From the IMG/VR virus record IMGVR_UViG_3300044591_002232, positions 124,001 through 188,000 of that record: a stretch of 64,000 nucleotides of DNA. One strand, written 5' to 3'. Below, piece by piece: positions 1,919 through 51,561 of the stretch. Each line of letters begins with the position of its first letter. The stretch's first letter is position 1. The position numbers were made by a program, and so were the translations under genes. A model generated the notes under the pieces. That model saw nothing but the letters and a program-made list of their open reading frames with translations, did no database searches and was not told where the DNA came from.

Positions 1919-1953
1919 TTATAAACCCATTAACTTAAGGAGGATTTTCTAAA

Positions 1954-2574
1954 ATGTCTACTTTACGCACAATCAACGGTTTTAAATCAGCCCTAAAAGG
2001 TGGTGGTGCTCGCCCTAATCTGTTTGAGGTTGAAATTCCAAGTTTTCCAAATTCCCTTAGTGGTATTTGGGGAACAGAGGAAAAAACATCCTTTAAATTT
2101 CTTTGTGATGCAACCTCAATGCCAGCATCAAATATTGATCCAATCAATATTCCTTTCAGGGGTCGTATTATGAAAGTGGCCGGAGACCGTACTATTGATA
2201 TCTGGTCAGTAACCGTAATCAACGATGAGGACTTCAGGCTCCGTTCTGCATTTGAACTCTGGGCTAATCTAATCAACAAACTTGAAAATGCAACTGGTGC
2301 TACTTCACCAAATGCTTATATGGTTGATGCCTTGGTCCATCAACTTGGTCGGGGTTCTACTAGTTTTTCTGATACTGCTAGTACTGCCCAAAATAATAGT
2401 TCTCTTACTCCACTAAGAACCTATAAAATGTATGATATTTGGCCTTCCAATGTATCAGCAATTGATCTATCTTATGGAACCAACAATGAAATCGAGCGGT
2501 TTACTGTCGATTTCCAAGTAAACTGGTGGGAAGCCGGTAGTCCAGCAGATCAGGCAAACAGGCCAATTAAGTAA
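1954..2574 (+). CDS. gp19: Tail tube protein
   Basis: GGGARPNLFEVEI, FRGRIMKVAGDRT, WPSNVSAIDLSY motifs; follows gp18. Confidence 0.93.
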   Translation: MSTLRTINGFKSALKGGGARPNLFEVEIPSFPNSLSGIWGTEEKTSFKFLCDATSMPASNIDPINIPFRGRIMKVAGDRTIDIWSVTVINDEDFRLRSAFELWANLINKLENATGATSPNAYMVDALVHQLGRGSTSFSDTASTAQNNSSLTPLRTYKMYDIWPSNVSAIDLSYGTNNEIERFTVDFQVNWWEAGSPADQANRPIK

Positions 2575-2575
2575 C

Positions 2576-2582
2576 CTAAATA
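2576..2582 (+). promoter_or_regulatory. T4-type late promoter CTAAATA (representative; others at 4281, 10480, 11761, 16211, 25762, 29204, 36817, 38662, 47241, 50250, 59186)
   Basis: (C/A)TAAATA recurs about 20-50 nt upstream of late genes; resembles the T4 gp55-dependent TATAAATA. Confidence 0.75.
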
Positions 2583-2604
2583 GGGTGATCTTAAAATTTA
2601 AATT

Positions 2605-4284
2605 ATGGCAAAGTTATTTGGTTTCTCAATTAATGATCGCACCGAATTAACCCCAAGTACAATCTCCCCCGTTCCTCAAAATGCCGAGGACGGGGCAGAT
2701 TATTATCTAACGTCTGGGTTTTTTGGCTCTTATGTTGATATTGAGGGTGTTTATAGAAACGAATTTGAATTAATCAAACGTTATCGAGAAATGGCACTTC
2801 ACCCAGAGGTGGACGAGGCCATTGAAGATATTGTAAATGAGGCAATTGTTTCTGATACTTATGACAGTCCGGTTCAGATTGAATTGTCTAATCTAAATGC
2901 TAGTGATGGTATTAAGACAAAAATCAGAGAGGAATTTAAACACGTTCTAAAACTTCTTGATTTTGATAAAAAATGTCATGAGATTTATAGAAATTGGTAT
3001 GTTGATGGTAGACTTTATTACCATAAGGTTATTGATCTTAAAAAACCAGAACTAGGAATTCAAGAACTTCGGTATATTGACAGCCTGAAGATGAGGTATA
3101 TCCGAAAGGCCAAGCAAGATAAGAGTAATAATAGAATTCTTCAGCACGATCCTAGAAATAGTGATCCAATGACTTATAAGTTCCCCGAAATGGAGGAATA
3201 TTTTCTTTATAGTCCAAGACCATCTTATCCAAATTCTGGAACCAATATTTCTTCAGCAAGAAATGATAATGATGGTGAAATTAAACTAGCCAAAGATAGT
3301 GTAACTTTTTGTACTTCTGGTCTGATTGATCGCAATAAAAATATTACTCTTTCTTATCTCAATAAGGCAATTAAATCTCTTAATCAACTTAGAATGATTG
3401 AGGATAGTATTGTAATTTATCGAATGGTTAGAGGGACCGAGAGAAGAATTTTCTATATTGATGTGGGTAATATGCCCAAAGTCAAGGCCGAGCAGTATCT
3501 CAGAGAAACAATGATGAGATACCGAAATAAGATGAATTATAATATTGAAACCGGAGAAGTTTCAAACGACAGAAGATTCCAGAGTCTTATGGATGATTAT
3601 TGGCTTCCAAGACGAGAAGGTGGAAGAGGAACTGAGGTAACTACTCTCCCTGGATCACAGAATCTTGGAGAACTAACTGACCTTAATTATTTCCAGAGAA
3701 AACTTTATAAGTCATTGAATGTTCCGTCCTCAAGAATTGATGGTGAAAGTGGTTTTAACCTAGGTAGGTCTTCAGAAATTCTCAGAGACGAAGTTAAGTT
3801 TTCAAAGTTTGTGGGGAGACTTAGAAAACGATTCTCTAGGTTGTTTGTGGACCTCCTAAGAACTCAATTGATTCTTAAGAATATTATTACTCCAGAAGAT
3901 TGGGCCGAGATGAGTGAGCATATTCAATTTGATTTCCTTTATGATAATCATTTTGCAGAACTCAAAGAATCTGAGCTTCTCACCGAAAGACTGAATATGG
4001 TCTCAATGGCCGAGCCTTATATTGGAAGATTTTATTCCCAGGATTATGTTAGAAGGAAAGTTCTTAGACAGACTGATGAAGAAATTGTTGAACAAGATGC
4101 TCTGATTCAAAAGGAAATTGAGACCGGAGTTATCCCAGATCCTTCTATTCCTATTGATCCAGAAACCGGGCAGCCTCTCGCAGAACCACCACCAGAGGAA
4201 ATTGAAGGTGATATGGGTAAGGTTCCAACAGAACCAGAAGTCAAAACAAAGGCAGTAGAAATGCCAAAAGGTGGCGACATCTAA
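2605..4284 (+). CDS. gp20: Portal vertex protein
   Basis: YREMALHPEVDEAIEDIVNEA, NQLRMIEDSIVIYR, RRIFYIDVGNMPK, DDYWLPRREGGRGTEVTTLPG. Confidence 0.97.
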   Translation: MAKLFGFSINDRTELTPSTISPVPQNAEDGADYYLTSGFFGSYVDIEGVYRNEFELIKRYREMALHPEVDEAIEDIVNEAIVSDTYDSPVQIELSNLNASDGIKTKIREEFKHVLKLLDFDKKCHEIYRNWYVDGRLYYHKVIDLKKPELGIQELRYIDSLKMRYIRKAKQDKSNNRILQHDPRNSDPMTYKFPEMEEYFLYSPRPSYPNSGTNISSARNDNDGEIKLAKDSVTFCTSGLIDRNKNITLSYLNKAIKSLNQLRMIEDSIVIYRMVRGTERRIFYIDVGNMPKVKAEQYLRETMMRYRNKMNYNIETGEVSNDRRFQSLMDDYWLPRREGGRGTEVTTLPGSQNLGELTDLNYFQRKLYKSLNVPSSRIDGESGFNLGRSSEILRDEVKFSKFVGRLRKRFSRLFVDLLRTQLILKNIITPEDWAEMSEHIQFDFLYDNHFAELKESELLTERLNMVSMAEPYIGRFYSQDYVRRKVLRQTDEEIVEQDALIQKEIETGVIPDPSIPIDPETGQPLAEPPPEEIEGDMGKVPTEPEVKTKAVEMPKGGDI

Positions 4285-4310
4285 ATAGTAGCAGTTCATT
4301 ATAAACAACC

Positions 4311-4460
4311 ATGGAAGAACTAATTAATGCCATTATTGAGGATGAATCTCCTTCTGCTATCAGCGATGCAATCAAAAATATTCTTTCTGTCAAGGCAGTA
4401 GAAAAAATTGATGAATACCGGCCAGAAGTTGCTGCTAGTATGTTTAACGTAAATGAGTGA
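4311..4460 (+). CDS. Small conserved head-region protein (49 aa, MEELINAIIEDESPSAISDAIK...)
   Basis: Read by eye; follows late promoter at 4281; resembles the small ORF found after gp20 in cyanomyoviruses. Confidence 0.7.
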   Translation: MEELINAIIEDESPSAISDAIKNILSVKAVEKIDEYRPEVAASMFNVNE

Positions 4461-5112
4461 TCTTTCAGATTTCTTTAAACTAGTATCTGAAGAAAAAAGA
4501 AAGGCCAAGGAGGAATTGGATGAATTAATATCCAATTCCTTTGAAGAATCTTTTGTTAAACCCCTAATCGAACAGAAATCTAGACCAAAAAAGAAGAAAA
4601 AAGAAGAGACATCTTTTGGTCAACCAACTCTCATTCAAAAATCCCTGGGGCTTCTTGCGGAACCAATTAAAACAAATAATTCTGATCCGTTAACTCCTCT
4701 TAATCAAAACTTTCTTACTCTAGAAGAATTCCAAAAGCACTATAAGATCTTTATTGATCGGGTTCAACAACAGCTCTCTACCCTAGGTGGAGGTGGTGAA
4801 ACTAATCTGACTTTTATGGATGTTCCAATGACATCCGTAACTTCTTCTTTTTATCAAATAGTTCCACAAGACTATTATATTGGAGTAAATTTCTCAGGTG
4901 CAGTAACAATTGTACTTCCTAAAGCCGAAAGAGAGGGGAAGATTTTTGTTGTAAAGGACGAGTTAGGAGAAGCATCCAAAGGAACCAATCGATACATCAC
5001 TATTTTACCATCAAGTTCAGATTTAATTGATGGAAGAGATCAGGCAATTCTTGCTTATAATTTTGGATCTCTTACCTTCATTTGGAGAAATAATTCTTGG
5101 AGAGTCATCTAA
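4453..5112 (+). CDS. Hypothetical protein with C-terminal beta-rich domain (DYYIGVN...VTIVLP...FVVKDELG), possibly virion-associated
   Basis: ORF track; overlaps stop of upstream ORF. Confidence 0.6.
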   Translation: MSDLSDFFKLVSEEKRKAKEELDELISNSFEESFVKPLIEQKSRPKKKKKEETSFGQPTLIQKSLGLLAEPIKTNNSDPLTPLNQNFLTLEEFQKHYKIFIDRVQQQLSTLGGGGETNLTFMDVPMTSVTSSFYQIVPQDYYIGVNFSGAVTIVLPKAEREGKIFVVKDELGEASKGTNRYITILPSSSDLIDGRDQAILAYNFGSLTFIWRNNSWRVI

Positions 5113-6369
5113 ATGTCACACCTTTATGAACCATATAAACCTCAAGATGATGCTTTTGGTAGGGCAAGAGTTTCTGAGCCATTTACCCTAGGTGATTATA
5201 AACATCTTTATTCAATTGATCCAGATTTTATTGATGTTTATTCTGGAATCGGCGCCACATTGACTTTTAACGTCAACCAGGCAGCCGCGAATCTTCAATC
5301 TGGTATTTCTACTAATGGTTATACAATTCATCAGACAAAAAGATATCATCATTATATGCCAGGTAAATCTCAATTGATTTACTCCTCTTTTAACTTTGGA
5401 CAACCTCAACAAAATGTAATCAAGAGGACCGGTTATTTTGATGATAGGGACGGAATTTATTTTGAACAGGATCAAAATGGAAATCTTAATTTTGTAATTC
5501 GTTCTTTTGTTAATGCCGGTATTGGTAATTCGGAAAGAAGAATTCCACAATCTCAATGGAACAAAGATCAACTTGATGGAAGTGGCGTCTCTGGATTTGA
5601 TTTAGACATTACAAAAACTCAACTTTTCTTTACCGATTTTGAATGGCTTGGTGTTGGTAGAGTTCGTTGTGGATTTAGTCTTGATGGTAAGAATATTGTT
5701 GCACATGAATTTTATAATTCTAATAATGTTGATACCGTTTACATGTCAAATCCCAATCTCCCAGTAAGATGTGAAATTAGAAACACTGGAACTCAAGTTG
5801 GTGCTGGGGGGTCTTTTATCCAAATTTGCTCTACTGTGATGAGTGAGGGTGGTTATACAGAGGCTGGAAGAGAATTTTCTCATGCAACTTCTTTAAGATC
5901 TGTTGGTGTTGGATCAACAGTTCCTGTTCTGGCAATTAAACTTAAAAATTCTTTTAAAGGTTATCCAAATAGAGCTACGGTAAAATTAGAGGATATTTCA
6001 GTTTTTAGTGTTGGATCAAATATAAAGTATGAGGTAGTAAAAATTAATAGTGCCGTGGGTTTGAGTACAACCGGGACCTGGATTTCTGAACACCCCGAAT
6101 CTGTTGTTGAATACAACCAAACTGCAACCGGAGTTGGAACAACTCTATTTGAGGATTTTATGAGTGGATATGCTTCTGGTGACAGTCAAAATGTAAATAA
6201 ACCAGCCGCAACTTCTTCTAACATTCAATCTGGCCCCACATCAAAGAAAAATTTCTTGTCTCAGAATTATAATTCAACCAATTCTGAGATTTTTTCTGTA
6301 ATAGTTACCAATATTGGTTCTAATTCAACAAATGTTGGTGTTTCTTTGAGGTGGAAAGAGATTTATTGA
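5113..6369 (+). CDS. Hypothetical virion/structural protein, beta-sandwich rich
   Basis: 418 aa ORF, G/S/T rich, translationally coupled in late region. Confidence 0.6.
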   Translation: MSHLYEPYKPQDDAFGRARVSEPFTLGDYKHLYSIDPDFIDVYSGIGATLTFNVNQAAANLQSGISTNGYTIHQTKRYHHYMPGKSQLIYSSFNFGQPQQNVIKRTGYFDDRDGIYFEQDQNGNLNFVIRSFVNAGIGNSERRIPQSQWNKDQLDGSGVSGFDLDITKTQLFFTDFEWLGVGRVRCGFSLDGKNIVAHEFYNSNNVDTVYMSNPNLPVRCEIRNTGTQVGAGGSFIQICSTVMSEGGYTEAGREFSHATSLRSVGVGSTVPVLAIKLKNSFKGYPNRATVKLEDISVFSVGSNIKYEVVKINSAVGLSTTGTWISEHPESVVEYNQTATGVGTTLFEDFMSGYASGDSQNVNKPAATSSNIQSGPTSKKNFLSQNYNSTNSEIFSVIVTNIGSNSTNVGVSLRWKEIY

Positions 6370-41601: not shown

Positions 41602-42057
41602 ATGTCAGAAGATTTAATCAAAGTTGCTGTTCTAGAGCAACGAGTTCAAGACCTTAAAGAATTTGTTCTTAAGGTTGATGAAGCAATCGAAAAAATAAGC
41701 CAGGTAAATGTCAGCCTGACAAAAATGATTGCGGTTCATGAAGAAAAAATTGACACTAGAGAAAGAGCCGAAAAGAGTCTTAATGAAAAAATAGACACAA
41801 TCTATACACAAATGCAGGAAGATCATAAAAATGTTCTTACTGAAATAAAGACACTAAGTACTAATATTGATAAGCGTCTAACTGATGTAGAAAAAGGTCA
41901 AAATAAAATTAATCTAAAAATCGCTGTGGTTCTAGGCATCGGTGCATTTCTTGGATTTGTCATTCAGAACTCTGGGTTCTTTGTTAAGATCCTGGCACAT
42001 CCACAGCACTTGACAACTCCTGTTCCTCATGCTACAATGGCCCCAGTCCAGAAGTGA
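41602..42057 (+). CDS. Coiled-coil protein with C-terminal hydrophobic segment
   Basis: VAVLEQ..KIDEAIEKI..MIAVHEEKI; IAVVLGIGAFLGFVI. Confidence 0.65.
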   Translation: MSEDLIKVAVLEQRVQDLKEFVLKVDEAIEKISQVNVSLTKMIAVHEEKIDTRERAEKSLNEKIDTIYTQMQEDHKNVLTEIKTLSTNIDKRLTDVEKGQNKINLKIAVVLGIGAFLGFVIQNSGFFVKILAHPQHLTTPVPHATMAPVQK

Positions 42058-42063
42058 TGTGAA

Positions 42064-43065
42064 TTGGATTTTATTGATGAAACCTTTATTGAACGTGTTG
42101 CACCTAGACTACAAAACTTCAAGAAAGTAAAACCTAAACTTTATAATTTTCGATGTCCCTATTGTGGCGACTCTTCTAGATCTAAAAAAAAGGCCAGAGG
42201 ATATCTCTATCCGGTAGATAATAACACGAATTATAAGTGCCATAACTGCGGAATCAGTATTTCTCTTAATAACTTTTTAAAAGAAATAGACCCACCTCTT
42301 TATAAAGAGTTTACAATTGAAAAATATAAGGCTGGCTTTACTGGAAAGAATTTTGTTGTTGAGGCTCCTAAATTTGAAATATCAAAACCAAATTTTAGAG
42401 AAAGAGTTGGGCTTCCGGCTGCATCTAAAAATGATGTTGCAAGACAATATCTCTTAAAAAGAAAAATTGATCCGGATAAGTTTTATTATACCGAAAACTT
42501 CAAACAATGGATCAATGAAATTACTTATGAGCCAAATCTTTTAGAAGAGCCTAGAATAGTAATACCTTTGTACTATAATAAGAAATTAATAGGAGTACAA
42601 GGCCGAGCCCTTAATTCTTCTTCGGTAAAATACATCACAATCATGTTTGATGAACATTCTCCGAAGATTTATAATTATGATAATGTTAATAAAAAAGAAT
42701 TTGTTTATGTCCTAGAAGGACCTTTTGATTCTTACTTTATTAAAAATTCGGTCGCCATGTGCGGGGCCGATTTAGATCTAAAAAGTCTAAATATCTATTA
42801 CCCGGTATATGTTTATGACAACGAACCTCGCAACCAAGAAATACATTCTAGAATGTCAAAGGTAATCAAAGAGGGTTATTCAATAGTCATATGGCCAGAT
42901 ACAATAAAACAAAAAGACGTTAATGATGCAGTTCTTGCGGGAATTGATGTTGAGGACGTTTTGTCCAAAAATATTTACAAAGACCTAGAAGCACAACTTA
43001 AATTCAACTATTGGAAGAAAAATGAGCGAAGAAATCAAAGTCAAAAAACGCAATGGCACTATTGA
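42064..43065 (+). CDS. gp61: DNA primase
   Basis: FRCPYCGDS..KCHNCG zinc finger, VLEGPFDS, YDNEPRN, KDVND. Confidence 0.93.
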   Translation: MDFIDETFIERVAPRLQNFKKVKPKLYNFRCPYCGDSSRSKKKARGYLYPVDNNTNYKCHNCGISISLNNFLKEIDPPLYKEFTIEKYKAGFTGKNFVVEAPKFEISKPNFRERVGLPAASKNDVARQYLLKRKIDPDKFYYTENFKQWINEITYEPNLLEEPRIVIPLYYNKKLIGVQGRALNSSSVKYITIMFDEHSPKIYNYDNVNKKEFVYVLEGPFDSYFIKNSVAMCGADLDLKSLNIYYPVYVYDNEPRNQEIHSRMSKVIKEGYSIVIWPDTIKQKDVNDAVLAGIDVEDVLSKNIYKDLEAQLKFNYWKKNERRNQSQKTQWHY

Positions 43066-44074
43066 GCCATTGCAACTTTCTAAACTCCATGAAATGGTCG
43101 CCTGCGCCTGTGAGGGCCTTTCTGGAGTTTCAGTATCTCAGGTAGAAATGGCATCTGGGATTCAATTTTATGATGGTATTTCAACCAATGAAATTCAAGA
43201 AATCTTGATCAAGGCCGCATCTGATCTTATTTCTCTAGATAATCCTAATTATCAATACGTGGCCGCAAGACTTCTTCTGTTTTCAATTCGGAAGAAGATC
43301 TATGGTGGTCGAATTGATCTACCTCATCTGAGTGAGCACATTAAAAAGTGTGTAGACCTTGGTGTTTATGATGCCTCCATTTATGAGAACTATTCTGAAG
43401 AAGAACTAGATCTGGTCAATTCTTTTATTGACCATGACCGGGATCTTTTGTTTACTTATGCTGGCCTTCGGCAGGTAGTTGATAAGTATCTTGTGCAAGA
43501 CCGAGTGGATAATGTTCTTTATGAGACTCCTCAGTTTATGTACTTGGTGATTGCACTTACTGGTTTTGCAAAGTATCCTAAAGACAAAAGGATGTCTTAT
43601 GTAAAGCGTTATTATGATGCAATTAGCAAGCATAAAATTAATATTCCTACACCAATTCTTGCAGGAGTCAGAACCAAACTGAGGCAATATAGTAGTTGTG
43701 TTCTTGTTGATGTAGGAGATAGTCTTTCTAGTATCGAGGCTAGTGACGCTGCGGTTTTTAGATATGTTGCACAGCGAGCCGGTCTAGGTATTAATGCTGG
43801 GCGTATTAGGGGGATAAACAGTAAAATTCGTGGCGGTGAAGTTGTCCACACTGGAGTTATTCCTTATCTGAAAAAGTTTGAGGCCACTGTAAAAAGTTGT
43901 ACGCAAAATGGAATTCGCGGGGGTTGTTTTGATTCTGATTCTGAAGTTTTATTAATTGATAGTGTAGAAATTGATGGTAAAATTTATACACTCGATGATG
44001 AAATTGATGGGGTTAAAGTGTCTGAAATTATAAATAGTCATAACGGAAATAAAACCGTTATGTTATTGGAGTAA
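43022..44074 (+). CDS. nrdA: NrdA fragment 1 (301-aa extein with ATP cone plus 49-aa split-intein N-half)
   Basis: VKKRNG ATP cone, PTPILAG, SSCVL, TQNGIRGG then CFDSDSEV. Confidence 0.93.
   Translation: MSEEIKVKKRNGTIEPLQLSKLHEMVACACEGLSGVSVSQVEMASGIQFYDGISTNEIQEILIKAASDLISLDNPNYQYVAARLLLFSIRKKIYGGRIDLPHLSEHIKKCVDLGVYDASIYENYSEEELDLVNSFIDHDRDLLFTYAGLRQVVDKYLVQDRVDNVLYETPQFMYLVIALTGFAKYPKDKRMSYVKRYYDAISKHKINIPTPILAGVRTKLRQYSSCVLVDVGDSLSSIEASDAAVFRYVAQRAGLGINAGRIRGINSKIRGGEVVHTGVIPYLKKFEATVKSCTQNGIRGGCFDSDSEVLLIDSVEIDGKIYTLDDEIDGVKVSEIINSHNGNKTVMLLE
43925..44071 (+). mobile_element. Split intein 1, N-half (49 aa, atypically short)
   Basis: Begins with Cys (CFDSDSEVLL) exactly where NrdA homology stops. 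Confidence 0.75.
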
Positions 44075-44077
44075 AAA

Positions 44078-45073
44078 ATGGAAGACTTAATTTGGAACGA
44101 AGAAACGATTAGAAAAAGTAGATCTCCTTTTAGTATCTACTTTTATCTTAAAAAAACCAATGGAAATCAAGAGGAAGCTCAGAAACTTTACAGGGAATTT
44201 TTGGATAAAAATGTACCATTTAAAGAAAAACATAATAGACCCAATGCAAAAGAGTATTGGATGACCCGAGGATTTAGCGAAGAAGAAGCCATAATAAAGG
44301 TTAGGGAATTTCAATCTAAGCCTTTAGATTTGGAAATTTATATTGAGAAGTACGGAGAGGAGGAGGGTCTAGCTAAGTTTAATAAAAGAAAAGAAAATCT
44401 TCAAAATAGATTTGATGTTGAGATTAAAAATGTTCAACAAAAATTAAATTGCAGTTATGATGAGGCATATGAATATTGTTGCCAAAGAAGGAGAAGTTGT
44501 TCTCCTAGAACAGTAGATTATTGGTTAAATAGGGGCCATTCATTGGAGGATGCAAAAAAATTAGTATCAAAATTTTCAAAAGAAAGTAGTCCAAGAAGCA
44601 TATATTATTGGATCAGAATTGGTTATACCGAAGAAGAAGCAAAATTAAAAGTTTCTGAATATCAAGATAACAATTCTATAAGTGCCATAATGAAACGATA
44701 TGGGTGCGATAAATTTGAGGCTCTTGATATACAAGAATCTATACTTGAAAAAACCAAAAAAACTAATATTCAAAATAAAAAGAGTGTCGAAATTGGTGAT
44801 GAATATGCTTTTTTCGTTTATAAAAAGGAGGTTCAACGCGAAACAAAAAAAACTCTAAGATTGTATAAAGATACTTTTGTCAAAACTGATAAAAGTCAAA
44901 CTCTAGATCATATGTATAGCGTTTTTTGGGGTTTTTATAATGATGTTCCTCCAAAAATAATTGGATCTATTTATAATCTTAGATATGTTTCTCAATCAGA
45001 AAACTCAAAAAAACAATCTAATTGCTCAATAACACTCGAAACCTTATTAGAAAAGTACGAAAATGGAAATTAA
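44078..45073 (+). CDS. Free-standing HNH-like homing endonuclease inside fractured nrdA
   Basis: YW..RG.S.EEA repeats; LDHMYS..GF.N.VPP.IIGS..NL...N..K...CSIT. Confidence 0.7.
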   Translation: MEDLIWNEETIRKSRSPFSIYFYLKKTNGNQEEAQKLYREFLDKNVPFKEKHNRPNAKEYWMTRGFSEEEAIIKVREFQSKPLDLEIYIEKYGEEEGLAKFNKRKENLQNRFDVEIKNVQQKLNCSYDEAYEYCCQRRRSCSPRTVDYWLNRGHSLEDAKKLVSKFSKESSPRSIYYWIRIGYTEEEAKLKVSEYQDNNSISAIMKRYGCDKFEALDIQESILEKTKKTNIQNKKSVEIGDEYAFFVYKKEVQRETKKTLRLYKDTFVKTDKSQTLDHMYSVFWGFYNDVPPKIIGSIYNLRYVSQSENSKKQSNCSITLETLLEKYENGN

Positions 45074-45464
45074 AATTAATCTGGCAAAGAAAAGAATTTC
45101 AGATGTCTCCGTTGGAGATAGAGTCTATTGTTATAACGAATTTGATGATAAATTTTGTGTTGGAAATGTAACAAATTTATTTACTCCAACAATAAAAAAA
45201 GAATATCAGGAAGAAATTCTTATTGGTGGGGAGGCTGTTTATACTTCTAGTATTCATCCTTTTTATGATGGTCTTAATAAGAAATGGGTGGACTCACGGG
45301 AAATCGACAACATTTTTGGATTAGGGGTTTATGGTGATTATATTGACATTTTAAATGATCATAATTATAAATCTAATTGTGATAAAACTTTTTATGATTT
45401 TACTGTTGATAAATATCACAACTATTTTGTCGGCAAAAATGGAAAATTTACTTTAACTCATAAT
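45063..45464 (+). mobile_element. Split intein 1, C-half (134 aa)
   Basis: ISDVSVGDRV, block B TSSIHPF, block F YDFTVDKYHNYF, block G THN followed by Ser. Confidence 0.8.
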
Positions 45465-47219
45465 TCATCCACAGTATTTTTTCCTGTGTGGCACCAAGAA
45501 ATCGAGGATATTATTGTATTAAAAAATAATAAAGGCTCAGAAGATAATCGTGTTCGCAACCTTGATTATGCCATTCAGCTGAGTAAAATTTTTTATGAGC
45601 GATTTATTCAGGATGGAGAAATTACTCTGTTTTCACCTCATAATGTTCCAGGTCTTTATGAAAAATTTGGTTTAGATGGATTTGATGAACTTTATGTAAA
45701 GTATGAAAATGATCCTTCTATTCCAAAGAAAAAAGTAAAGGCCCAAGAGCTTATTATTGATATCTTGAAAGAGCGTGCAGAGACTGGTCGGATTTATCTT
45801 ATGAATATCGATCATTGTAATTCACATGGTCCTTTTAAGGATCAGATTACAATGAGTAACCTTTGTGTTGCTGGTGATACTAAAATTGAAATTGAAATTT
45901 TTGTTAAAGATATTAATGATTACAGGTGGGCAACAATTGACATAAAAAATTTAAATGATTTTATTAACAATCCAGAGTATGGGAATCTGAGAGTTCTTTC
46001 TTACGACCTTAATACTAGAACGAATGTAACCCAATCTATTACTGCATTTGCCGAAACTTTACCAAAAGCCCAGGTAATGAAACTTAGGCTCAGTAATAAT
46101 GTCGAAATCGTTGTTACCCCAGATCATAAGGTTTATACCAAAAATCGAAGCTATGTTATGGCCAAGGATCTGACTGCTTATGATGAATTAGTTTCACCAA
46201 AATTGAATGAATCTCTAAAAGTTGTTTCAACCGAATATCTTGAGGAAGAAATTCCTGTTTATGATATTACTGTAGAAGGAACTCATAATTTCTTTGCAAA
46301 TGGAGTTCTTGTTTCCAATTGTATGGAAATCCTTCTAAAAACTACCCCGATTGAACATATTGATGATGTAGATGGATCTATTGCTCTTTGTATTCTTTCT
46401 TGTGTTAATGTAGGTACAATTAAGTCTGATAAAGAGCTTGAAGAATGTTGTGATCTTTCTGTTAGATTCTTAGATGAGCTAATTGACCATCAGGAATATC
46501 CTGTTAAGGCCGCCGAATTAACAACCAAGGCTAGTCGTTCTCTAGGTATTGGTTATATTGGTCTGGCTCATTATCTTGCTAAATTGGGATTTAAATATTC
46601 TGATCCTGGTGCATGGGGAGCTGTCCATAAACTAACTGAAAGTTTTCAGTATTATCTTCTAAAATCATCCAATAATCTAGCAAAAGAAAAGGGTGCATGT
46701 GACAACTTTAAACACACTAAGTATTCTGATGGAATTCTTCCAATTGATACTTATAAGAAAGAAGTTGATGAAATTTGTGATGTAGAATATACTCATGACT
46801 GGGAACAACTTCGTCAGGATATTTTAGAACATGGTCTTCGCCATACTACACTCTCCTCTCAACCCCCAACGGAGAGTTGCCTTTTTTGGGAACATAAGAT
46901 TAAAACTTCTACCGGGGAAATGGACTTCCATCAAATTGCCGAATATGGTGGACTTGATTGGAGAGGGATTGAGGAAAATGATGCAATCGGCTGGTATGAC
47001 CTGAACAAGACTATTACAGTTGAAACTCAAGATGGATACAAAGAAGTTGATAAACTTTATTTCAATGGAAATAAAGAAGTTGCGACTATTACCTTTGAAA
47101 ATGGTAAAGTGATTAAGTGTACACCCAATCATAAGTTTTTGGTTCGACTAGAAAATGGTTCCACTATCTGGAAGCGAGTTTATGAATTGAATGAAGATGA
47201 CGAAGTAGTTGAGATTTAA
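45063..47219 (+). CDS. nrdA: NrdA fragment 2 (IntC1 - extein - cis intein - extein - IntN2)
   Basis: LTHN|SSTVFFPVWHQEIEDI; ERAETGRIY; SNL|C...SN|CMEIL; RSLGIGYIGLA; QPPTES|CLF. Confidence 0.93.
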   Translation: MEIKINLAKKRISDVSVGDRVYCYNEFDDKFCVGNVTNLFTPTIKKEYQEEILIGGEAVYTSSIHPFYDGLNKKWVDSREIDNIFGLGVYGDYIDILNDHNYKSNCDKTFYDFTVDKYHNYFVGKNGKFTLTHNSSTVFFPVWHQEIEDIIVLKNNKGSEDNRVRNLDYAIQLSKIFYERFIQDGEITLFSPHNVPGLYEKFGLDGFDELYVKYENDPSIPKKKVKAQELIIDILKERAETGRIYLMNIDHCNSHGPFKDQITMSNLCVAGDTKIEIEIFVKDINDYRWATIDIKNLNDFINNPEYGNLRVLSYDLNTRTNVTQSITAFAETLPKAQVMKLRLSNNVEIVVTPDHKVYTKNRSYVMAKDLTAYDELVSPKLNESLKVVSTEYLEEEIPVYDITVEGTHNFFANGVLVSNCMEILLKTTPIEHIDDVDGSIALCILSCVNVGTIKSDKELEECCDLSVRFLDELIDHQEYPVKAAELTTKASRSLGIGYIGLAHYLAKLGFKYSDPGAWGAVHKLTESFQYYLLKSSNNLAKEKGACDNFKHTKYSDGILPIDTYKKEVDEICDVEYTHDWEQLRQDILEHGLRHTTLSSQPPTESCLFWEHKIKTSTGEMDFHQIAEYGGLDWRGIEENDAIGWYDLNKTITVETQDGYKEVDKLYFNGNKEVATITFENGKVIKCTPNHKFLVRLENGSTIWKRVYELNEDDEVVEI
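45864..46319 (+). mobile_element. Cis mini-intein (152 aa) at the NrdA active-site SNL|CxE
   Basis: CVAGDT, VTPDHKVY, YDITVEGTHNFFANGVLVSN followed by Cys. Confidence 0.9.
46878..47216 (+). mobile_element. Split intein 2, N-half (113 aa)
   Basis: CLFWEHKI, CTPNHKF, ELNEDDEV then stop. Confidence 0.88.
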
Positions 47220-47270
47220 TGCGTTGATGCCTTCACTTTACTAAATAATAATAGTTTAGTAAAGGCATCA

Positions 47271-48347
47271 ATGAAGACAAAACTAGTTACTTTAATGAAA
47301 ACCAGATTTAACATTTTAACCCCGCACGAACTCTTAACAGAATTGAAACAAATCGGAAAAATTGACTATAGGTCATTAAGAAAGCCATTTGAAGAAACCC
47401 CGCCAGAGAGATTTGATCTTGAGGTTATTAAAAAATATGTTAGTTATGTTTTTCTATACCCAAATAAAAGAAAACTTCAATATGAACCAGAATATTGGAT
47501 GTACAGAAGGAACCTTTCTTATAATGAAGCTGTTGAGCTTATTAAACAAAATAAAATAGATAATGGTCAAACAAAAGAGGCTTTTATAAAAAGATATGGA
47601 GAAGAAAAAGGATTAGAAATGTATGAAAAATTTAGATTAACCAGCGCATATCCGTCTTCCGATGAATGGTTCAAAGAAAAATATGGGGAAACATGGGAAG
47701 AAGAAAAAGCATATGCTATGAAAAGAAAATCTAAACGAACTGTAGAATATTGGACCCATCGTGGATATAGTTTAGAAGAAGCTAAAATTGAAGTTAGTAA
47801 ATATCAAAGATCAACCTCTGGTGTTCATAGAGAATATTATAGACAAAGAGGATATAGTGAAGATGAAATTGCTGTTATTTTTAATGAAATAGATAAGAAA
47901 AAACCCAATCATAAAAGAAACACCAATTATCTCCGTGAAAAATACCCCGATACTTGGCAAGAGATTTATCTTGAAGTATCTGAAAAATATAGAAAAAGAA
48001 TGGAGGAGTTAGGAGTATGGATTGAAAATGACATTGCTGACGACTTTAAAAAATATAAAACGCTTGTAATTAGATATACTAATCAGAGTTTATTATTTTA
48101 TGGAGAATTGATTGAGAATTTAGAATTGAGATCTAAAGACTTTCAATTAGATCACAAATATTCAATTAAAATGGGATTTATAAATAATATTCCAGCTGAA
48201 ATAATTGGATCAATAGTAAATTTAGAGATACTTCCAGCGAGTATTAATGGCTCAAAACAACATAAATGTTCTATTACTAAAACCCACCTTTTAACCGAGT
48301 ACAAAAAATTTAAGGAGACACATGAAAGTAAAAACGATTCAATTTGA
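47271..48347 (+). CDS. Second free-standing HNH-like homing endonuclease inside nrdA
   Basis: YW..RGYSLEEA repeats; LDHKYS..GF.NNIPAEIIGS..NL...N.SK..KCSIT; late promoter 47241. Confidence 0.72.
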   Translation: MKTKLVTLMKTRFNILTPHELLTELKQIGKIDYRSLRKPFEETPPERFDLEVIKKYVSYVFLYPNKRKLQYEPEYWMYRRNLSYNEAVELIKQNKIDNGQTKEAFIKRYGEEKGLEMYEKFRLTSAYPSSDEWFKEKYGETWEEEKAYAMKRKSKRTVEYWTHRGYSLEEAKIEVSKYQRSTSGVHREYYRQRGYSEDEIAVIFNEIDKKKPNHKRNTNYLREKYPDTWQEIYLEVSEKYRKRMEELGVWIENDIADDFKKYKTLVIRYTNQSLLFYGELIENLELRSKDFQLDHKYSIKMGFINNIPAEIIGSIVNLEILPASINGSKQHKCSITKTHLLTEYKKFKETHESKNDSI

Positions 48348-48426
48348 AGGAGAAATTCTTCCAACTTACGACATTGAAGTTCCAGAAGTTCATCATTACA
48401 ACTGTGAAGGGCTAGTATCTCACAAC
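48322..48426 (+). mobile_element. Split intein 2, C-half (35 aa)
   Basis: Blocks F and G ending SHN with +1 Ser. Confidence 0.88.
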
Positions 48427-48861
48427 AGTTCGGTTTCGTGTAATGCAACAAACGGAGTAGAACCTCCTAGAGATTATCTTTCCATTAAACAATCTAAAAA
48501 GGGAACTCTCAAACAAATTGTACCCCAGTATAATAAACTAAAGAACAATTATACACTTCTTTGGGACATGCCTTCAAATGAAGGATATATTAATTGTGTT
48601 TCTGTTATGCAAAAGTTCTTTGACCAGGGAATTAGTGTAAATGGTAGCTATAATCCCCAGAATTATCCAAATAATGAAGTGCCAATCAGTGTTATAGTCA
48701 ATGACGTTCTTTCACTATACAAATATGGTGCAAAGACTGCATATTATCATAACACATATGATGGCAAAACTGATGATGTTTCTGCCGAAGAAATTAAAAA
48801 TAATGATTTAATTTCCGAAATCTTATCATCAGAAGAAGAATGTATCGCATGTAACGTTTAA
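48322..48861 (+). CDS. nrdA: NrdA fragment 3 (35-aa IntC2 plus 144-aa C-terminal extein)
   Basis: YDIEVPEVHHYNCEGLVSHN|SSVSCNATNGVEPPR, DQGIS, KTAYY, C-terminal CIAC redox pair. Confidence 0.92.
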   Translation: MKVKTIQFEGEILPTYDIEVPEVHHYNCEGLVSHNSSVSCNATNGVEPPRDYLSIKQSKKGTLKQIVPQYNKLKNNYTLLWDMPSNEGYINCVSVMQKFFDQGISVNGSYNPQNYPNNEVPISVIVNDVLSLYKYGAKTAYYHNTYDGKTDDVSAEEIKNNDLISEILSSEEECIACNV

Positions 48862-48873
48862 TCTAGGAAATTT

Positions 48874-50022
48874 ATGTCTAAAGTAAAAGGAATGACAGTT
48901 TTTAATACAGAAGAAATTAACACTAAAAAGCAAAAAATGTTTTTTAGTGCTCCATTGGGGATCCAACGATATGATGAGTATAAATACCCAATTTTTGAAA
49001 AACTCACACAACAGCAGCTCAGTTTCTTTTGGCGTCCAGAAGAAATAAATCTTCAAAAAGATAGGGCAGATTATCAGACTCTTCGCTCAGAGCAAAAACA
49101 CATTTATACTTCTAATTTAAAGTATCAGATTATGCTTGATTCTGTTCAGGGTCGAGGAACTTCAATTGCTTTTCTGCCATATTGTTCTTTACCAGAACTT
49201 GAATCATGTATAGAAGCCTGGGGATTCATGGAAATGATCCATAGTCGATCATATACTTATATTATAAAAAATATCTATGCTAACCCATCTGAAATATTTG
49301 ATACTATTATTGGTGATGAGAGAATTTTAGAAAGAGCCAAGAGTATTACTGATAATTACGATGAATATATTCAACATGCTCAACAATACTCTTCTTCAAA
49401 TCTTTGGCAATTTAATAATGAGGGTGTAGATTTAGGTAAAAATGAGCTTTATGAGGTAAAGAGAAAACTTTATCGAGCCATAATGGCAGTGAATATCCTA
49501 GAAGGAATTCGCTTTTATGTTTCCTTTGCTTGTTCTTTTGCCTTTGGTGAGCTGAAGTTAATGGAAGGAAGTGCGAAGATTATTTCGCTAATTAGCCGCG
49601 ATGAAGCGTGTCATTTAAATATAACCCAGAATATTCTTTCAAAATGGAAATCAGGCGACGATCCTGATATGATTAAAATTGCAAAAGAAGAAGAGCAATG
49701 GGTTTATAAGACATTTGAAGAAGCAGTTAATCAAGAAAAAAGATGGGCCGAATATATTTTTAAAGACGGCTCACTTATAGGGTTAAACTCCGCTCTTCTT
49801 TGTCAATATGTTGAGTGGGTTTGTAATAGACGTATGAAGGCTATTGGTTTTAAACCTCTTTATGATATTCCGGCCAATAATAATCCTCTTCCATGGACGG
49901 ATAACTGGCTCAGTTCAAAGGGGGTGCAGGTTGCACCTCAAGAGGTCCAGATTACTTCTTATCTAGTAGGGGGTCTTAATCAGGACATTAAACCAGATAG
50001 TTTCGCCAACTTCAAACTTTGA
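48874..50022 (+). CDS. nrdB: Ribonucleotide reductase class Ia beta subunit
   Basis: FFWRPEEI, DSVQGRG, EMIHSRSY, LEGIRFYVSF, RDEACH. Confidence 0.96.
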   Translation: MSKVKGMTVFNTEEINTKKQKMFFSAPLGIQRYDEYKYPIFEKLTQQQLSFFWRPEEINLQKDRADYQTLRSEQKHIYTSNLKYQIMLDSVQGRGTSIAFLPYCSLPELESCIEAWGFMEMIHSRSYTYIIKNIYANPSEIFDTIIGDERILERAKSITDNYDEYIQHAQQYSSSNLWQFNNEGVDLGKNELYEVKRKLYRAIMAVNILEGIRFYVSFACSFAFGELKLMEGSAKIISLISRDEACHLNITQNILSKWKSGDDPDMIKIAKEEEQWVYKTFEEAVNQEKRWAEYIFKDGSLIGLNSALLCQYVEWVCNRRMKAIGFKPLYDIPANNNPLPWTDNWLSSKGVQVAPQEVQITSYLVGGLNQDIKPDSFANFKL

Positions 50023-50036
50023 CTAAATATATTAGT

Positions 50037-50120
50037 CTGTTAGTACGACAATACTCCACAGACAGGATTAGGTGCTCATATGAGCACCTTTTTTTATAAA
50101 TATTAATGTCGTACTAACAG
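50037..50120 (+). promoter_or_regulatory. Nested inverted-repeat/terminator/late-promoter cassette
   Basis: ctgttagtacgaca (50037-50050) and tgtcgtactaacag (50107-50120) flank palindrome aggtgctcatatgagcacct and TATAAATA. Confidence 0.65.
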
Positions 50121-50127
50121 AATATAA

Positions 50128-50223
50128 ATGACTAAATTAAATCCGAGAATTTATACATATAAAATTACTTTATATCAGAGAAATAGAGGAATAGATAAAT
50201 CAAATCGAATAAGAATTAAATAA
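50128..50223 (+). pseudogene. Truncated GIY-YIG-type endonuclease N-terminus
   Basis: MTKLNPRIYTYKIT then unrelated sequence; same upstream cassette as the intact gene at 52963. Confidence 0.55.
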
Positions 50224-50283
50224 CCCCGGCCCCTTTAAGGGTCTTTTTACTAAATACTAAAAGAAAACCTATTTCTAAAAAAT

Positions 50284-51561
50284 ATGTCACTTTATAGTCT
50301 AACAGAAGCCTATTCGGAAATCTACGATCACCGAAAGGTCGAAGATCTGTTTGATAATCTTCGATTTGTTGATTACATGCAAGATGGAGATATTGAACAA
50401 GTAGTCGAAGAACTCGTTTGGGAATTCCGTGATTATGGTAATACCTTAGACGAATCATTTGAAATGCTCTCATTTGCCTCGACCGATGAGGTAATTTGTG
50501 AGTCTTACGATGAGCTTATTGAAGATATTCTCACCGAGGCAACTGTTACCAAAGGATCCCAGCGTTCTCAATATGCTGGCTCTGCTCAGGATAGAGTGAC
50601 TTCTGGTCGTGGTGATATTATGGCCCAACAATCTGCTGCTAAAAAACTAGCCAGAAAGTCTGGTAAGGCGGTTGCGGCTGGCCTGGATGCAGAATCAAAG
50701 CAAAGAATGTCAGCTCGCGCCGCACGAGTTGGTAATGCTATTTCTAAGGTTAAATCCAAACTCAGTGGTCCTATTTCTTCTGTAAAACAGTCTATCTCAG
50801 GTTCTGCTGGTGGTCTAGGCCGTGCCACTAAGGCTATGGGTGGTAAAGTAGTAGAAAAAGGTAAGGCCATGTTAAAATCGATTCTTCGTCGTGGTGGTAA
50901 GGCCATCTATGGTGCTGGAAAGGCAATTGAGGGTAGTGGTAGAGCGGCATCCGCTGCTCCAGCAACCACTAGAACCGCCAAGGTTGGTCGCACCACTGTT
51001 ACCACTACCACAGAGCCTGGTGGTAGTAAAAGGCAGGCTGTTGGTCGGGCTGTTCGTAAAGTAGGTGTTGCGCTTCAAAGAAAGGCGGGTAAGAAAGATG
51101 AGCCCAAAATGAGTCGGGCTGATTATGAGTCTCGTAAGTCCGAAAGAACTACATCTGCCAAGAAAGAAGTGGGTGATGCATTTGCAAAGCCAAAACCAAT
51201 GCTTGCTCTTCCAGCAAAAACCTCTGGCCAGCCTGCTGTCCAAAGAACAGTTTCGGCTCGTAAACAAGAGGCCGCCAAGAAAATTGCCAAGGCCGCAGAA
51301 GGTTCAACTGCTAGGGGAACTCGATTTTCTGGTCCAGGGGCTCGTCTTTCTAGCCAAAGAACCAAGACTGGTTATAAAGAGCGTCTTGCCAAGTTTGCAT
51401 CTCAACTATCCGAGCAAGATTATAACACTCTAGTTGATTATATTCTTGAGGACATGATTTCAGAAGGTTATGCTTCTGATGTACTAGAAGCTCTTGATCT
51501 ATTTGAATCATTGACCGAAGATAGTGTAATTGATATTGCACTTGATTATTTTAACGACTGA
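50284..51561 (+). CDS. Late protein: acidic termini with long K/A/R/G-rich basic core
   Basis: ORF track; C-terminal YILEDMISEGYA module; late promoter 50250. Confidence 0.7.
   Translation: MSLYSLTEAYSEIYDHRKVEDLFDNLRFVDYMQDGDIEQVVEELVWEFRDYGNTLDESFEMLSFASTDEVICESYDELIEDILTEATVTKGSQRSQYAGSAQDRVTSGRGDIMAQQSAAKKLARKSGKAVAAGLDAESKQRMSARAARVGNAISKVKSKLSGPISSVKQSISGSAGGLGRATKAMGGKVVEKGKAMLKSILRRGGKAIYGAGKAIEGSGRAASAAPATTRTAKVGRTTVTTTTEPGGSKRQAVGRAVRKVGVALQRKAGKKDEPKMSRADYESRKSERTTSAKKEVGDAFAKPKPMLALPAKTSGQPAVQRTVSARKQEAAKKIAKAAEGSTARGTRFSGPGARLSSQRTKTGYKERLAKFASQLSEQDYNTLVDYILEDMISEGYASDVLEALDLFESLTEDSVIDIALDYFND

Follow-up and report, generated by a model that had tools for sequence, protein, structure and literature searches.

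Fractured phage genes bearing split inteins were reported by Dassa et al. in 2009, among them NrdA-1 to NrdA-7, NrdJ-1, gp41-1 and others, and all seven NrdA cases displayed a single break at the thiyl-radical site, with GIY-YIG or Vsr-like genes (PMC2677866). A different type of fracture was found in the T4-like phage Aeh1, in which a free-standing HNH-type endonuclease gene splits nrdA into the arrangement nrdA-a/mobE/nrdA-b (Friedrich 2007; Crona 2011, PMC3045599). Atypically split inteins, including AceL/GOS TerL, VidaL and PolB16 OarG, have N-terminal parts (IntN) of 15-37 amino acids (aa) (PMC10189870), and tandem trans-splicing of three polypeptides by two orthogonal split inteins has been engineered (PMC12707363, PMC7090010). 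The present analysis concerns a stretch of 64,000 nucleotides (nt), positions 124,001 to 188,000 of the IMG/VR virus record IMGVR_UViG_3300044591_002232, hereafter called the window. Its nrdA gene, encoding the large subunit of a class Ia ribonucleotide reductase (RNR), is distributed over three genes, and the three chains are most probably joined into one NrdA by two split inteins and one cis intein.

The three nrdA pieces and their assemblies

Five open reading frames (ORFs) of the same strand, ORF1, HEN1, ORF2, HEN2 and ORF3, lie between a primase gene and nrdB. A preliminary description, based on the window alone, had located nrdA homology on ORFs 43022-44074, 45063-47219 and 48322-48861, quoted the motifs at both split junctions and at the cis site, and added up exteins of 301 + 133 + 186 + 144 = 764 aa. 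These coordinates proved exact, the motifs were all present as quoted, and the lengths were correct, a cyanophage NrdA measuring 762 aa. The parts are as follows.

43022-44074, + strand: ORF1, 350 aa
43022..43924, + strand: NrdA extein 1 (E1), residues 1-301, with ATP-cone, all-alpha domain and barrel start; C-terminus NGIRGG
43925..44074, + strand: IntN1, 49 aa and stop codon; N-terminus CFDSDSEV; net charge -9
44078..45073, + strand: HEN1, 331 aa; helical YW..RG.SEEEA repeats and a C-terminal D-H...N...N-K module (HNH-like)
45063-47219, + strand: ORF2, 718 aa
45063..45464, + strand: IntC1 (C-terminal part of intein 1), 134 aa; block B SSIH, blocks F and G; C-terminus THN
45465..45863, + strand: NrdA extein 2 (E2), 133 aa; N-terminus SSTVFF, C-terminus MSNL
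45864..46319, + strand: contiguous mini-intein (site 2), 152 aa; start CVAGDTKI, block B TPDH, end VSN
46320..46877, + strand: NrdA extein 3 (E3), 186 aa; N-terminus CMEI, C-terminus PPTES
46878..47219, + strand: IntN3, 113 aa and stop codon; start CLFWEH, block B TPNH, acidic tail
47271..48347, + strand: HEN2, 358 aa; paralogue of HEN1; Shine-Dalgarno sequence and start codon of ORF3 within its 3' end
48322-48861, + strand: ORF3, 179 aa
48322..48426, + strand: IntC3, 35 aa; C-terminus VSHN
48427..48861, + strand: NrdA extein 4 (E4), 144 aa; N-terminus SSVSCNATNG; C-terminal Cys pair CIACNV

Pfam assigned positions 1-79, 79-392 and 392-523 of the RNR barrel domain to ORF1, ORF2 and ORF3 in turn, the ATP-cone and all-alpha domains to ORF1 and the HINT/intein domains to ORF2; PHROGs assignments of the RNR pieces were in agreement. 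An alignment of the exteins with cyanophage NrdA, as proposed in the preliminary description, was performed piecewise (local alignment) against the intact 762-aa NrdA of Synechococcus phage Sf-CH5. E1 covered residues 1-301, E2 302-434, E3 435-619 and E4 620-762, so that the four exteins tile this protein exactly, without gap or overlap, at 66-78% identity, and the joins GG|S, NL|C and ES|S are residues of the uninterrupted protein. The ATP-cone, all-alpha and ten-stranded barrel domains occur in the order of class Ia NrdA, with the thiyl-radical Cys present and nrdB adjacent. Structures of E. coli R1 were matched (E 5e-101), and C439 is among the aligned residues. Cultured phages yielded nothing in a DNA search at near identity; only distant cyanomyovirus nrdA was found, in four pieces. 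Extensions of ORF3 into IntC3 seen by tblastn in phages Bellamy, S-SCSM1, P-TIM40 and S-CAM3 were dismissed as spurious, nrdA being intact there.

When IMG/VR was scanned with IntC1, the contig of the window itself (249.8 kb) was retrieved together with four contigs of other metagenomes. These sister contigs were 98.3-98.8% identical over the block, contained both breaks, and showed the same primase/ORF1/HEN1/ORF2/HEN2/ORF3/nrdB order with every ORF open. All four were devoid of exactly 456 nt, corresponding to the cis intein to the base. The same junctions were seen in independent JGI, ENA and Logan assemblies. Breaks of this kind could be artefacts of assembly, or could be removed as RNA introns, and the preliminary description had named both possibilities as fatal to its interpretation. 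Both are effectively refuted: the breaks recur with intact ORFs in independent assemblies, Rfam found no group I or group II intron at E<=1 in 42000-50500, which favours joining at the protein level, and the intervening DNA encodes long conserved ORFs.

Comparison of the window with its sister contigs also bears on the possibility that selfish elements have overrun nrdA and left a decaying pseudogene without functional product. In favour of this, Dwivedi et al. suggested degenerating nrdA in Campylobacter phages, and Campylobacter phage IBB_35, which has inteins at the three sites in question, possesses an nrdA with a broken frame and no firmer annotation than 'similar to'. For the window we nevertheless regard decay as highly improbable. 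Synonymous differences overwhelmingly prevailed over non-synonymous ones in the four exteins (28:2, 8:0, 12:1 and 19:10), as they did in HEN1 (8:0); none of the five ORFs was interrupted in any of the complete assemblies inspected (about 20 contigs), nrdB was intact, and the layout has persisted across lineages whose inteins are only 54-69% identical.

The differences between the window and the sister contigs were unevenly distributed. They clustered in extein DNA beside the intein and HEN borders, with 29 in 43500-43924, about 21 in 45750-46750 and 37 in 48250-49000, most other 250-nt bins containing 0-3. These clusters look like co-conversion or recombination tracts tied to mobile elements.

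Two split inteins and one cis intein

Catalytic residues were identified in all three inteins. Cys1 is present in each (CFDSDS, CVAGDT and CLFWEH) and invariant in relatives; block B, (T/S)xxH, reads SSIH in IntC1, TPDH in the cis intein and TPNH in IntN3; the C-terminal Asn is followed by Ser in inteins 1 and 3 and by Cys in intein 2. A penultimate His is found in the split inteins (THN|S and SHN|S), whereas the cis intein (VSN|C) has Ser instead. The HINT fold was recognised through matches to Pfam PT-HINT and Intein_splicing.

Intein 1, with the junction RGG|C...HN|S, is very asymmetric. Its N-terminal part of 49 aa is short and without block B, and its C-terminal part of 134 aa carries blocks B, F and G, residue 12 of IntC1 aligning to position 20 of a 138-aa HINT domain. 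Its split site is atypical, the usual site lying between blocks B and F. In a natural contiguous version (protein P0010), IntN1 residues 1-46 are directly joined to IntC1 residues 3-134, and in P0026 another 28 residues are absent at the IntN1/IntC1 junction point; the HEN1 gene therefore sits at the end of a lineage-specific insert after the first HINT strands. An AlphaFold2 (AF2) model of the natural contiguous intein 1, built from a 26-row alignment with a mean pLDDT (per-residue model confidence) of 75.6, matched only BIL and intein structures (probability 1.0, template modelling score up to 0.73). By offset from the R1 alignment of the other sites, site 1 would lie near R1 residue 299/300.

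At site 2, the mini-intein is inserted directly before the Cys aligned with the thiyl-radical C439 of E. coli R1. It matched the NrdJ-1 intein structure 8ubs (E 9e-13) and is homologous to the split IntN2 (40% identity) and IntC2 (67%) of a sister allele, L012, its nine-residue linker corresponding to the position of the GIY-YIG gene in that allele. Intein 3 is split into 113 and 35 aa, between the equivalents of R1 residues 624 and 625, and a contiguous homologue occupies the same site in Campylobacter phage PC14. Contiguous natural versions of all three inteins thus exist at the same sites, and the halves at sites 1 and 3 can be considered complementary because of these counterparts. The three inteins have little in common with one another: the cis intein and intein 3 are about 29-31% identical, and no significant sequence similarity was detected between inteins 1 and 3. 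Since the latter two are, in addition, cut at different places of the HINT domain (49/134 and 113/35), they should not cross-react, and we infer that the two split pairs are orthogonal.

Little or no variation was seen at Cys1, at the +1 Ser, in block B and in blocks F/G when 22 sequences of IntC1 and 31 of IntN3, ranging from 54 to 99% identity, were compared, and the short IntN1 and IntC3 parts were likewise conserved in the diverged loci L016 and L017. This conservation of catalytic residues argues against mere docking domains and against decay. It bears on an explanation in which the fragments assemble non-covalently, as Aeh1 NrdA-a and NrdA-b do, the intein halves serving for docking and no peptide bond being formed. 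The fractured Aeh1 NrdA works without splicing (PMC3045599; PMC2677866), and an intein-less break in L037, L048 and P0026 suggests that the lineage tolerates non-covalent pieces. But docking would not need Cys1, the block B His, the terminal Asn and the +1 Ser/Cys, which are kept in all relatives down to 54% identity, and without splicing a domain of 183 aa would stay in the loop beside the C292 equivalent and one of 148 aa within the P-x-E-S|S substrate loop. Non-covalent assembly is accordingly considered a decidedly unlikely account of the window.

Another explanation concerns the cis intein. The split inteins may work while the newly acquired mini-intein, ending in Ser-Asn, splices poorly, in which case little active NrdA would be made, the phage would rely on the host RNR and the allele would be a dead end. 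In line with this, the cis intein was present in one of five near-identical assemblies, the window's own contig, and it has Ser at the penultimate position, which is occupied by His in L016 and in the split allele. On the other hand, ORF2 is uninterrupted, as are the genes of relatives whose penultimate residue is Gly (L017) or His, and cis inteins at site 2 are common in the family. Inteins without a penultimate His are, moreover, known to splice. A dead-end allele is thus an unlikely, if conceivable, explanation.

The joining of three chains by two split inteins and one cis intein remains our preferred interpretation, and the following course of events can be proposed. The nrdA of a T4-like, cyanophage-related myovirus would have been invaded, at three positions close to the active site, by inteins unrelated to one another. 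Insertion of a free-standing HEN-family gene into DNA coding for an intein loop, once at site 1 and once at site 3, would then have converted a contiguous intein into a split one and nrdA into three cistrons on one strand. Their predicted products are E1-IntN1 (39 kDa), IntC1-E2-[mini-intein]-E3-IntN3 (82.5 kDa) and IntC3-E4 (20 kDa). Cis excision of the mini-intein from the middle chain would create the N-x-C-x-E thiyl-radical motif; IntN1 would pair with IntC1 and IntN3 with IntC3, and each pair would trans-splice through a Cys1 thioester, attack by Ser+1 and Asn cyclisation. The expected product is a single NrdA of 764 aa and 86 kDa, the partner of NrdB.

Several observations weigh against this interpretation. 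Splicing of the three pieces is something we infer from sequence, the window's exact allele with its cis intein occurs in one assembly only (its own contig), and that intein ends with Ser-Asn, not His-Asn, and could splice poorly. The start of ORF2 has no clear Shine-Dalgarno sequence. In the model of intein 1, the first 14 or so residues and the IntN1 part are of low confidence (pLDDT 29-71). Finally, the proteins encoded between the pieces match no Pfam nuclease family and no PDB fold. Conversely, the two split inteins and one cis intein postulated in the preliminary description are supported by the catalytic residues, the contiguous counterparts, the recurrence of the layout, the synonymous bias of extein differences and the lack of an intron.

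The intervening genes and their expression signals

An endonuclease had initially been assigned to each break. Both breaks do contain an ORF, of 331 and 358 aa, but a match to a nuclease family was found for neither product. HEN1 and HEN2 are paralogues (33% identity, E 1e-28). Searches against Pfam at E<=10 with the whole proteins, with their C-terminal modules and with ten long family members returned no family, and thus no HNH profile; PDB gave no match by sequence or by fold (Foldseek), and PHROGs only families of unknown function. In a 25-member alignment, D277, H278, S281, G285, N300, L301, N309 and K312 were invariant, and an AF2 model (pLDDT 87.6) showed a strand (275-278), a second strand (301-304) and a helix (306-310) holding invariant residues, an arrangement which confers an appearance similar to HNH/HNN nucleases. 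When the fold was compared with BFVD, significant matches (E<=0.001) were uncharacterised or DUF7487 phage proteins, including those of T4-like, Campylobacter and other phages, while proteins annotated as HNHc, DUF559 or VSR matched only at E 0.05-0.5.

The 50-aa C-terminal module is also found fused to NUMOD3 motifs elsewhere (64% identity), and the central YW..RG.SEEEA repeats also occur in combination with a DUF559/Vsr-like nuclease domain. Homing endonucleases typically show such exchange of modules. A profile search retrieved 7,458 clusters (at 50% identity) of the family at E<=0.001 among 1.84 billion representatives. An intervening ORF is located in both breaks of the window, and polymorphism between presence, absence and remnants was observed in L016, L031 and L036-38; such a pattern at fixed points fits selfish mobile genes. 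On the basis of their motif, HEN1 and HEN2 are probably HNH-like homing endonucleases belonging to a family without Pfam model.

Expression signals of the downstream nrdA pieces are intertwined with these genes. The start of ORF2 overlaps the stop of HEN1 by 11 nt, and ORF3 is preceded, at 7 nt from its ATG, by GGAG, both lying within the 3' end of HEN2. Further signals and flanking features are listed below.

44029..44036, + strand: T4-late-promoter-like octamer TATAAATA, 42 nt 5' of the HEN1 start; putative function
47222..47273, + strand: stable RNA hairpin (-24.1 kcal/mol, z -6.5); HEN2 start codon paired, CTAAATA in the loop
42064-43065: DNA primase gene, upstream flank, listed from a TTG start
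48874..50022, + strand: nrdB, partner small subunit, 382 aa (Pfam and PHROGs)
50070-50089: terminator-like hairpin 3' of nrdB

The hairpin between the IntN3 stop and the HEN2 start was kept in L017 (8685-8739), where two of its pairs show compensatory changes. The HEN2 AUG is paired in both the window and L017. A related hairpin, AAUGCCU...AGGCAUU with an (A/U)AAAUA loop, was present in all seven lineages checked, L032-L035 and L039 among them, the AUG not always being covered. A hairpin upstream of HEN1 was rejected because it is weak (z -2.7) and conservation was lacking in both L016 and L017, and a sigma-70 promoter scan of the locus gave results not above chance. In T4 I-TevI and Aeh1 mobE, a late promoter and a hairpin are said to restrict endonuclease synthesis. 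By analogy, the HEN2 hairpin may be a switch combining a late promoter with translational occlusion, and the hairpin and late-promoter-like elements may, speculatively, restrict endonuclease synthesis to late infection.

Two observations concern the flanks. Read from its TTG codon, the primase ORF extends 44 nt into nrdA (43022-43065), the overlap in cultured cyanophages being about 4 nt. Directly after nrdB, a 425-aa ORF (50284-51561) has a G+C content of 46-49% against about 33% in its surroundings, and its middle section is rich in Ala, Lys, Gly and Ser.

Polymorphism of the sites and comparison with known systems

Relatives were collected by protein searches restricted to IntC1 and to IntN3 and mapped onto the parts, together with the underlying contigs. 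The following states were encountered.

Site 1: empty; contiguous (P0010, 178 aa; P0026/L048, about 149 aa); split with HEN1
Site 2, unsplit: empty; contiguous mini-intein; contiguous with LAGLIDADG domain (L017)
Site 2, split: with GIY-YIG gene (L012, L023, L033); without gene (L024)
Site 3: empty; split with HEN2; split with HEN2 remnant (L016, L036-38); split with none (L031)

These states occur in various combinations. Doubly fractured, three-gene nrdA was found with breaks at sites 1 and 3 (L003-L006, L034), at sites 1 and 2 (L012/L013, 99% identical to the window's phage, L023 and L024) and at sites 2 and 3 (L033). The C-terminal NrdA piece was undivided in all loci split at sites 1 and 2, and an allele of four genes, split at all three sites, was absent from the IMG/VR scans, a systematic scan of metagenome contigs not having been made. 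The search of metagenomes suggested in the preliminary description did reveal the same triple arrangement: the split-cis-split layout recurs in the diverged L016 (104-kb scaffold, HEN2 degraded) and L017/L018 (174-kb scaffold, cis intein with a LAGLIDADG domain). Lineages sharing the layout have inteins that are only 54-69% identical, and the middle-piece architecture of ORF2 recurs in proteins P0005, P0014, P0016, P0025 and P0027. The nrdA layout of the window is one state among those of a wider polymorphism.

Side observations were made on individual relatives. The gap of 146 nt between ORF2 and ORF3 in L016 (8233-8377) is a remnant of a degenerate HEN2 3' end; as it still supplies the Shine-Dalgarno sequence and start of ORF3, the split has been locked in after loss of the endonuclease. 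An additional, intein-less nrdA break is located 13-16 residues after the thiyl Cys in L037 (4428-6481), L048 (2278-3324) and P0026, its insert of 1-2 kb containing small ORFs, one of which resembles an IENR/NUMOD DNA-binding module. L037 combines this Aeh1-like, intein-less fracture with a split intein 3.

A broader reading is that the locus represents the first recognised natural tandem trans-splicing together with a combinatorial polymorphism present in phage populations and driven by a large family of free-standing HNH-like homing endonucleases, as yet without annotation, through which contiguous inteins become split. We put it forward tentatively, as a serious candidate; in it, two co-evolved orthogonal split inteins (49/134, atypical, and 113/35, canonical) and a cis intein would reassemble one essential enzyme from the products of three genes.

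Assembly of three pieces by orthogonal split inteins has so far been an engineering trick. If working, the natural orthogonal pair of the window would be a ready-made tool, one of its members being of the rare, atypically split kind that has a short IntN, and a test case for the avoidance of cross-reaction. Public data hold all proposed stages at the three nrdA sites, from empty through contiguous and endonuclease-inserted to endonuclease lost with the split locked, and the Dassa/Pietrokovski model of split-intein origin is therefore directly testable by comparison. If its members are homing endonucleases, the HEN family (about 7,500 clusters at 50% identity) would be a large unexplored source of sequence-specific nucleases.

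The site-3 element is also carried, unrecognised, by cultured Klebsiella jumbo phages, phiKp_21 (LC768485) and KP13-7 (OP617745), so that the proposals are partly testable with existing isolates. Their split intein, at the same site 3, is 37-45% identical to that of the window, and a HEN2-family gene (28% identity, E 2e-22) is inserted between a 740-aa NrdA-N and a 186-aa NrdA-C. They differ from the window by their single break, and their host group is very distant. In phiKp_21 (L019), positions 1638-5350 encode NrdA-N with IntN (740 aa), the HEN2-family gene (324 aa) and IntC with NrdA-C (186 aa); the last two are listed there as hypothetical proteins, which makes this an unrecognised split-intein NrdA in GenBank.

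Comparison with the fractured genes of Dassa et al. reveals shared features. A phage gene of DNA metabolism, in this case a cyanophage-type NrdA, is interrupted by a split intein whose two halves enclose a free-standing gene of the same strand, and the expression signals of the downstream piece are within the inserted gene. Complementary halves, adjacent and on the same strand, are found twice, at sites 1 and 3, and the sister allele L012 is itself split at the thiyl site with a GIY-YIG gene in the manner of the NrdA loci of Dassa et al. However, nrdA of the window has two breaks, at two other sites, its intervening genes are neither GIY-YIG nor Vsr-like, and its thiyl site is occupied by a contiguous mini-intein. 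The Aeh1 locus shares with the window an nrdA broken by a free-standing gene inside the operon; it has no intein and its chains stay separate, whereas both window breaks carry complete intein halves and none is intein-less.

A counterpart regarding insertion sites is NrdA of Campylobacter phage IBB_35, which has inteins at the same three points (RGG|C...HN|SS, NL|C...HN|C and P-P-x-x-x|C...SHN|SS), two of them homologous to inteins 1 and 3 of the window (30-35% identity). Unlike those of the window, all three are contiguous, in one gene, and imply cis-splicing only. The IBB_35 record has three inteins annotated, where the IBB_35 paper mentions two, and its frame is interrupted once intein 2 has begun. 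Several inteins in one host protein were reportedly also described by Liu and Yang in 2003, with two contiguous inteins and one split intein in dnaE of Trichodesmium erythraeum and four inteins in RIR1. That DnaE resembles the window's NrdA in mixing cis and trans events within one protein, but it is said to have one split intein, two genes and a break without endonuclease genes.

Like the atypically split inteins, intein 1 has a short IntN without block B and a long IntC with blocks B, F and G. Its host is NrdA, instead of terminase, helicase or PolB, its nucleophiles are Cys1 and Ser+1, and its IntN of 49 aa exceeds the 15-37 aa of the others because a 28-aa lineage-specific insert precedes the break. 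The middle piece, with IntC at its N-terminus and IntN at its C-terminus, has the organisation of engineered tandem systems; those are man-made, whereas the pair of the window would be natural and co-evolved. In the searchable literature, which leaves most subscription journals outside its scope, only engineered systems were found, and no natural protein that depends on two trans-splicing events is reported. Within that literature, the early suggestion that the arrangement may be undescribed stands for double trans-splicing, but not for the three insertion sites, already annotated with contiguous inteins in IBB_35. What distinguishes the window from all these systems would be the association, in one doubly fractured gene, of an atypical and a canonical split intein with a cis intein and a probable endonuclease family without Pfam model, apparently the first natural case of tandem trans-splicing.

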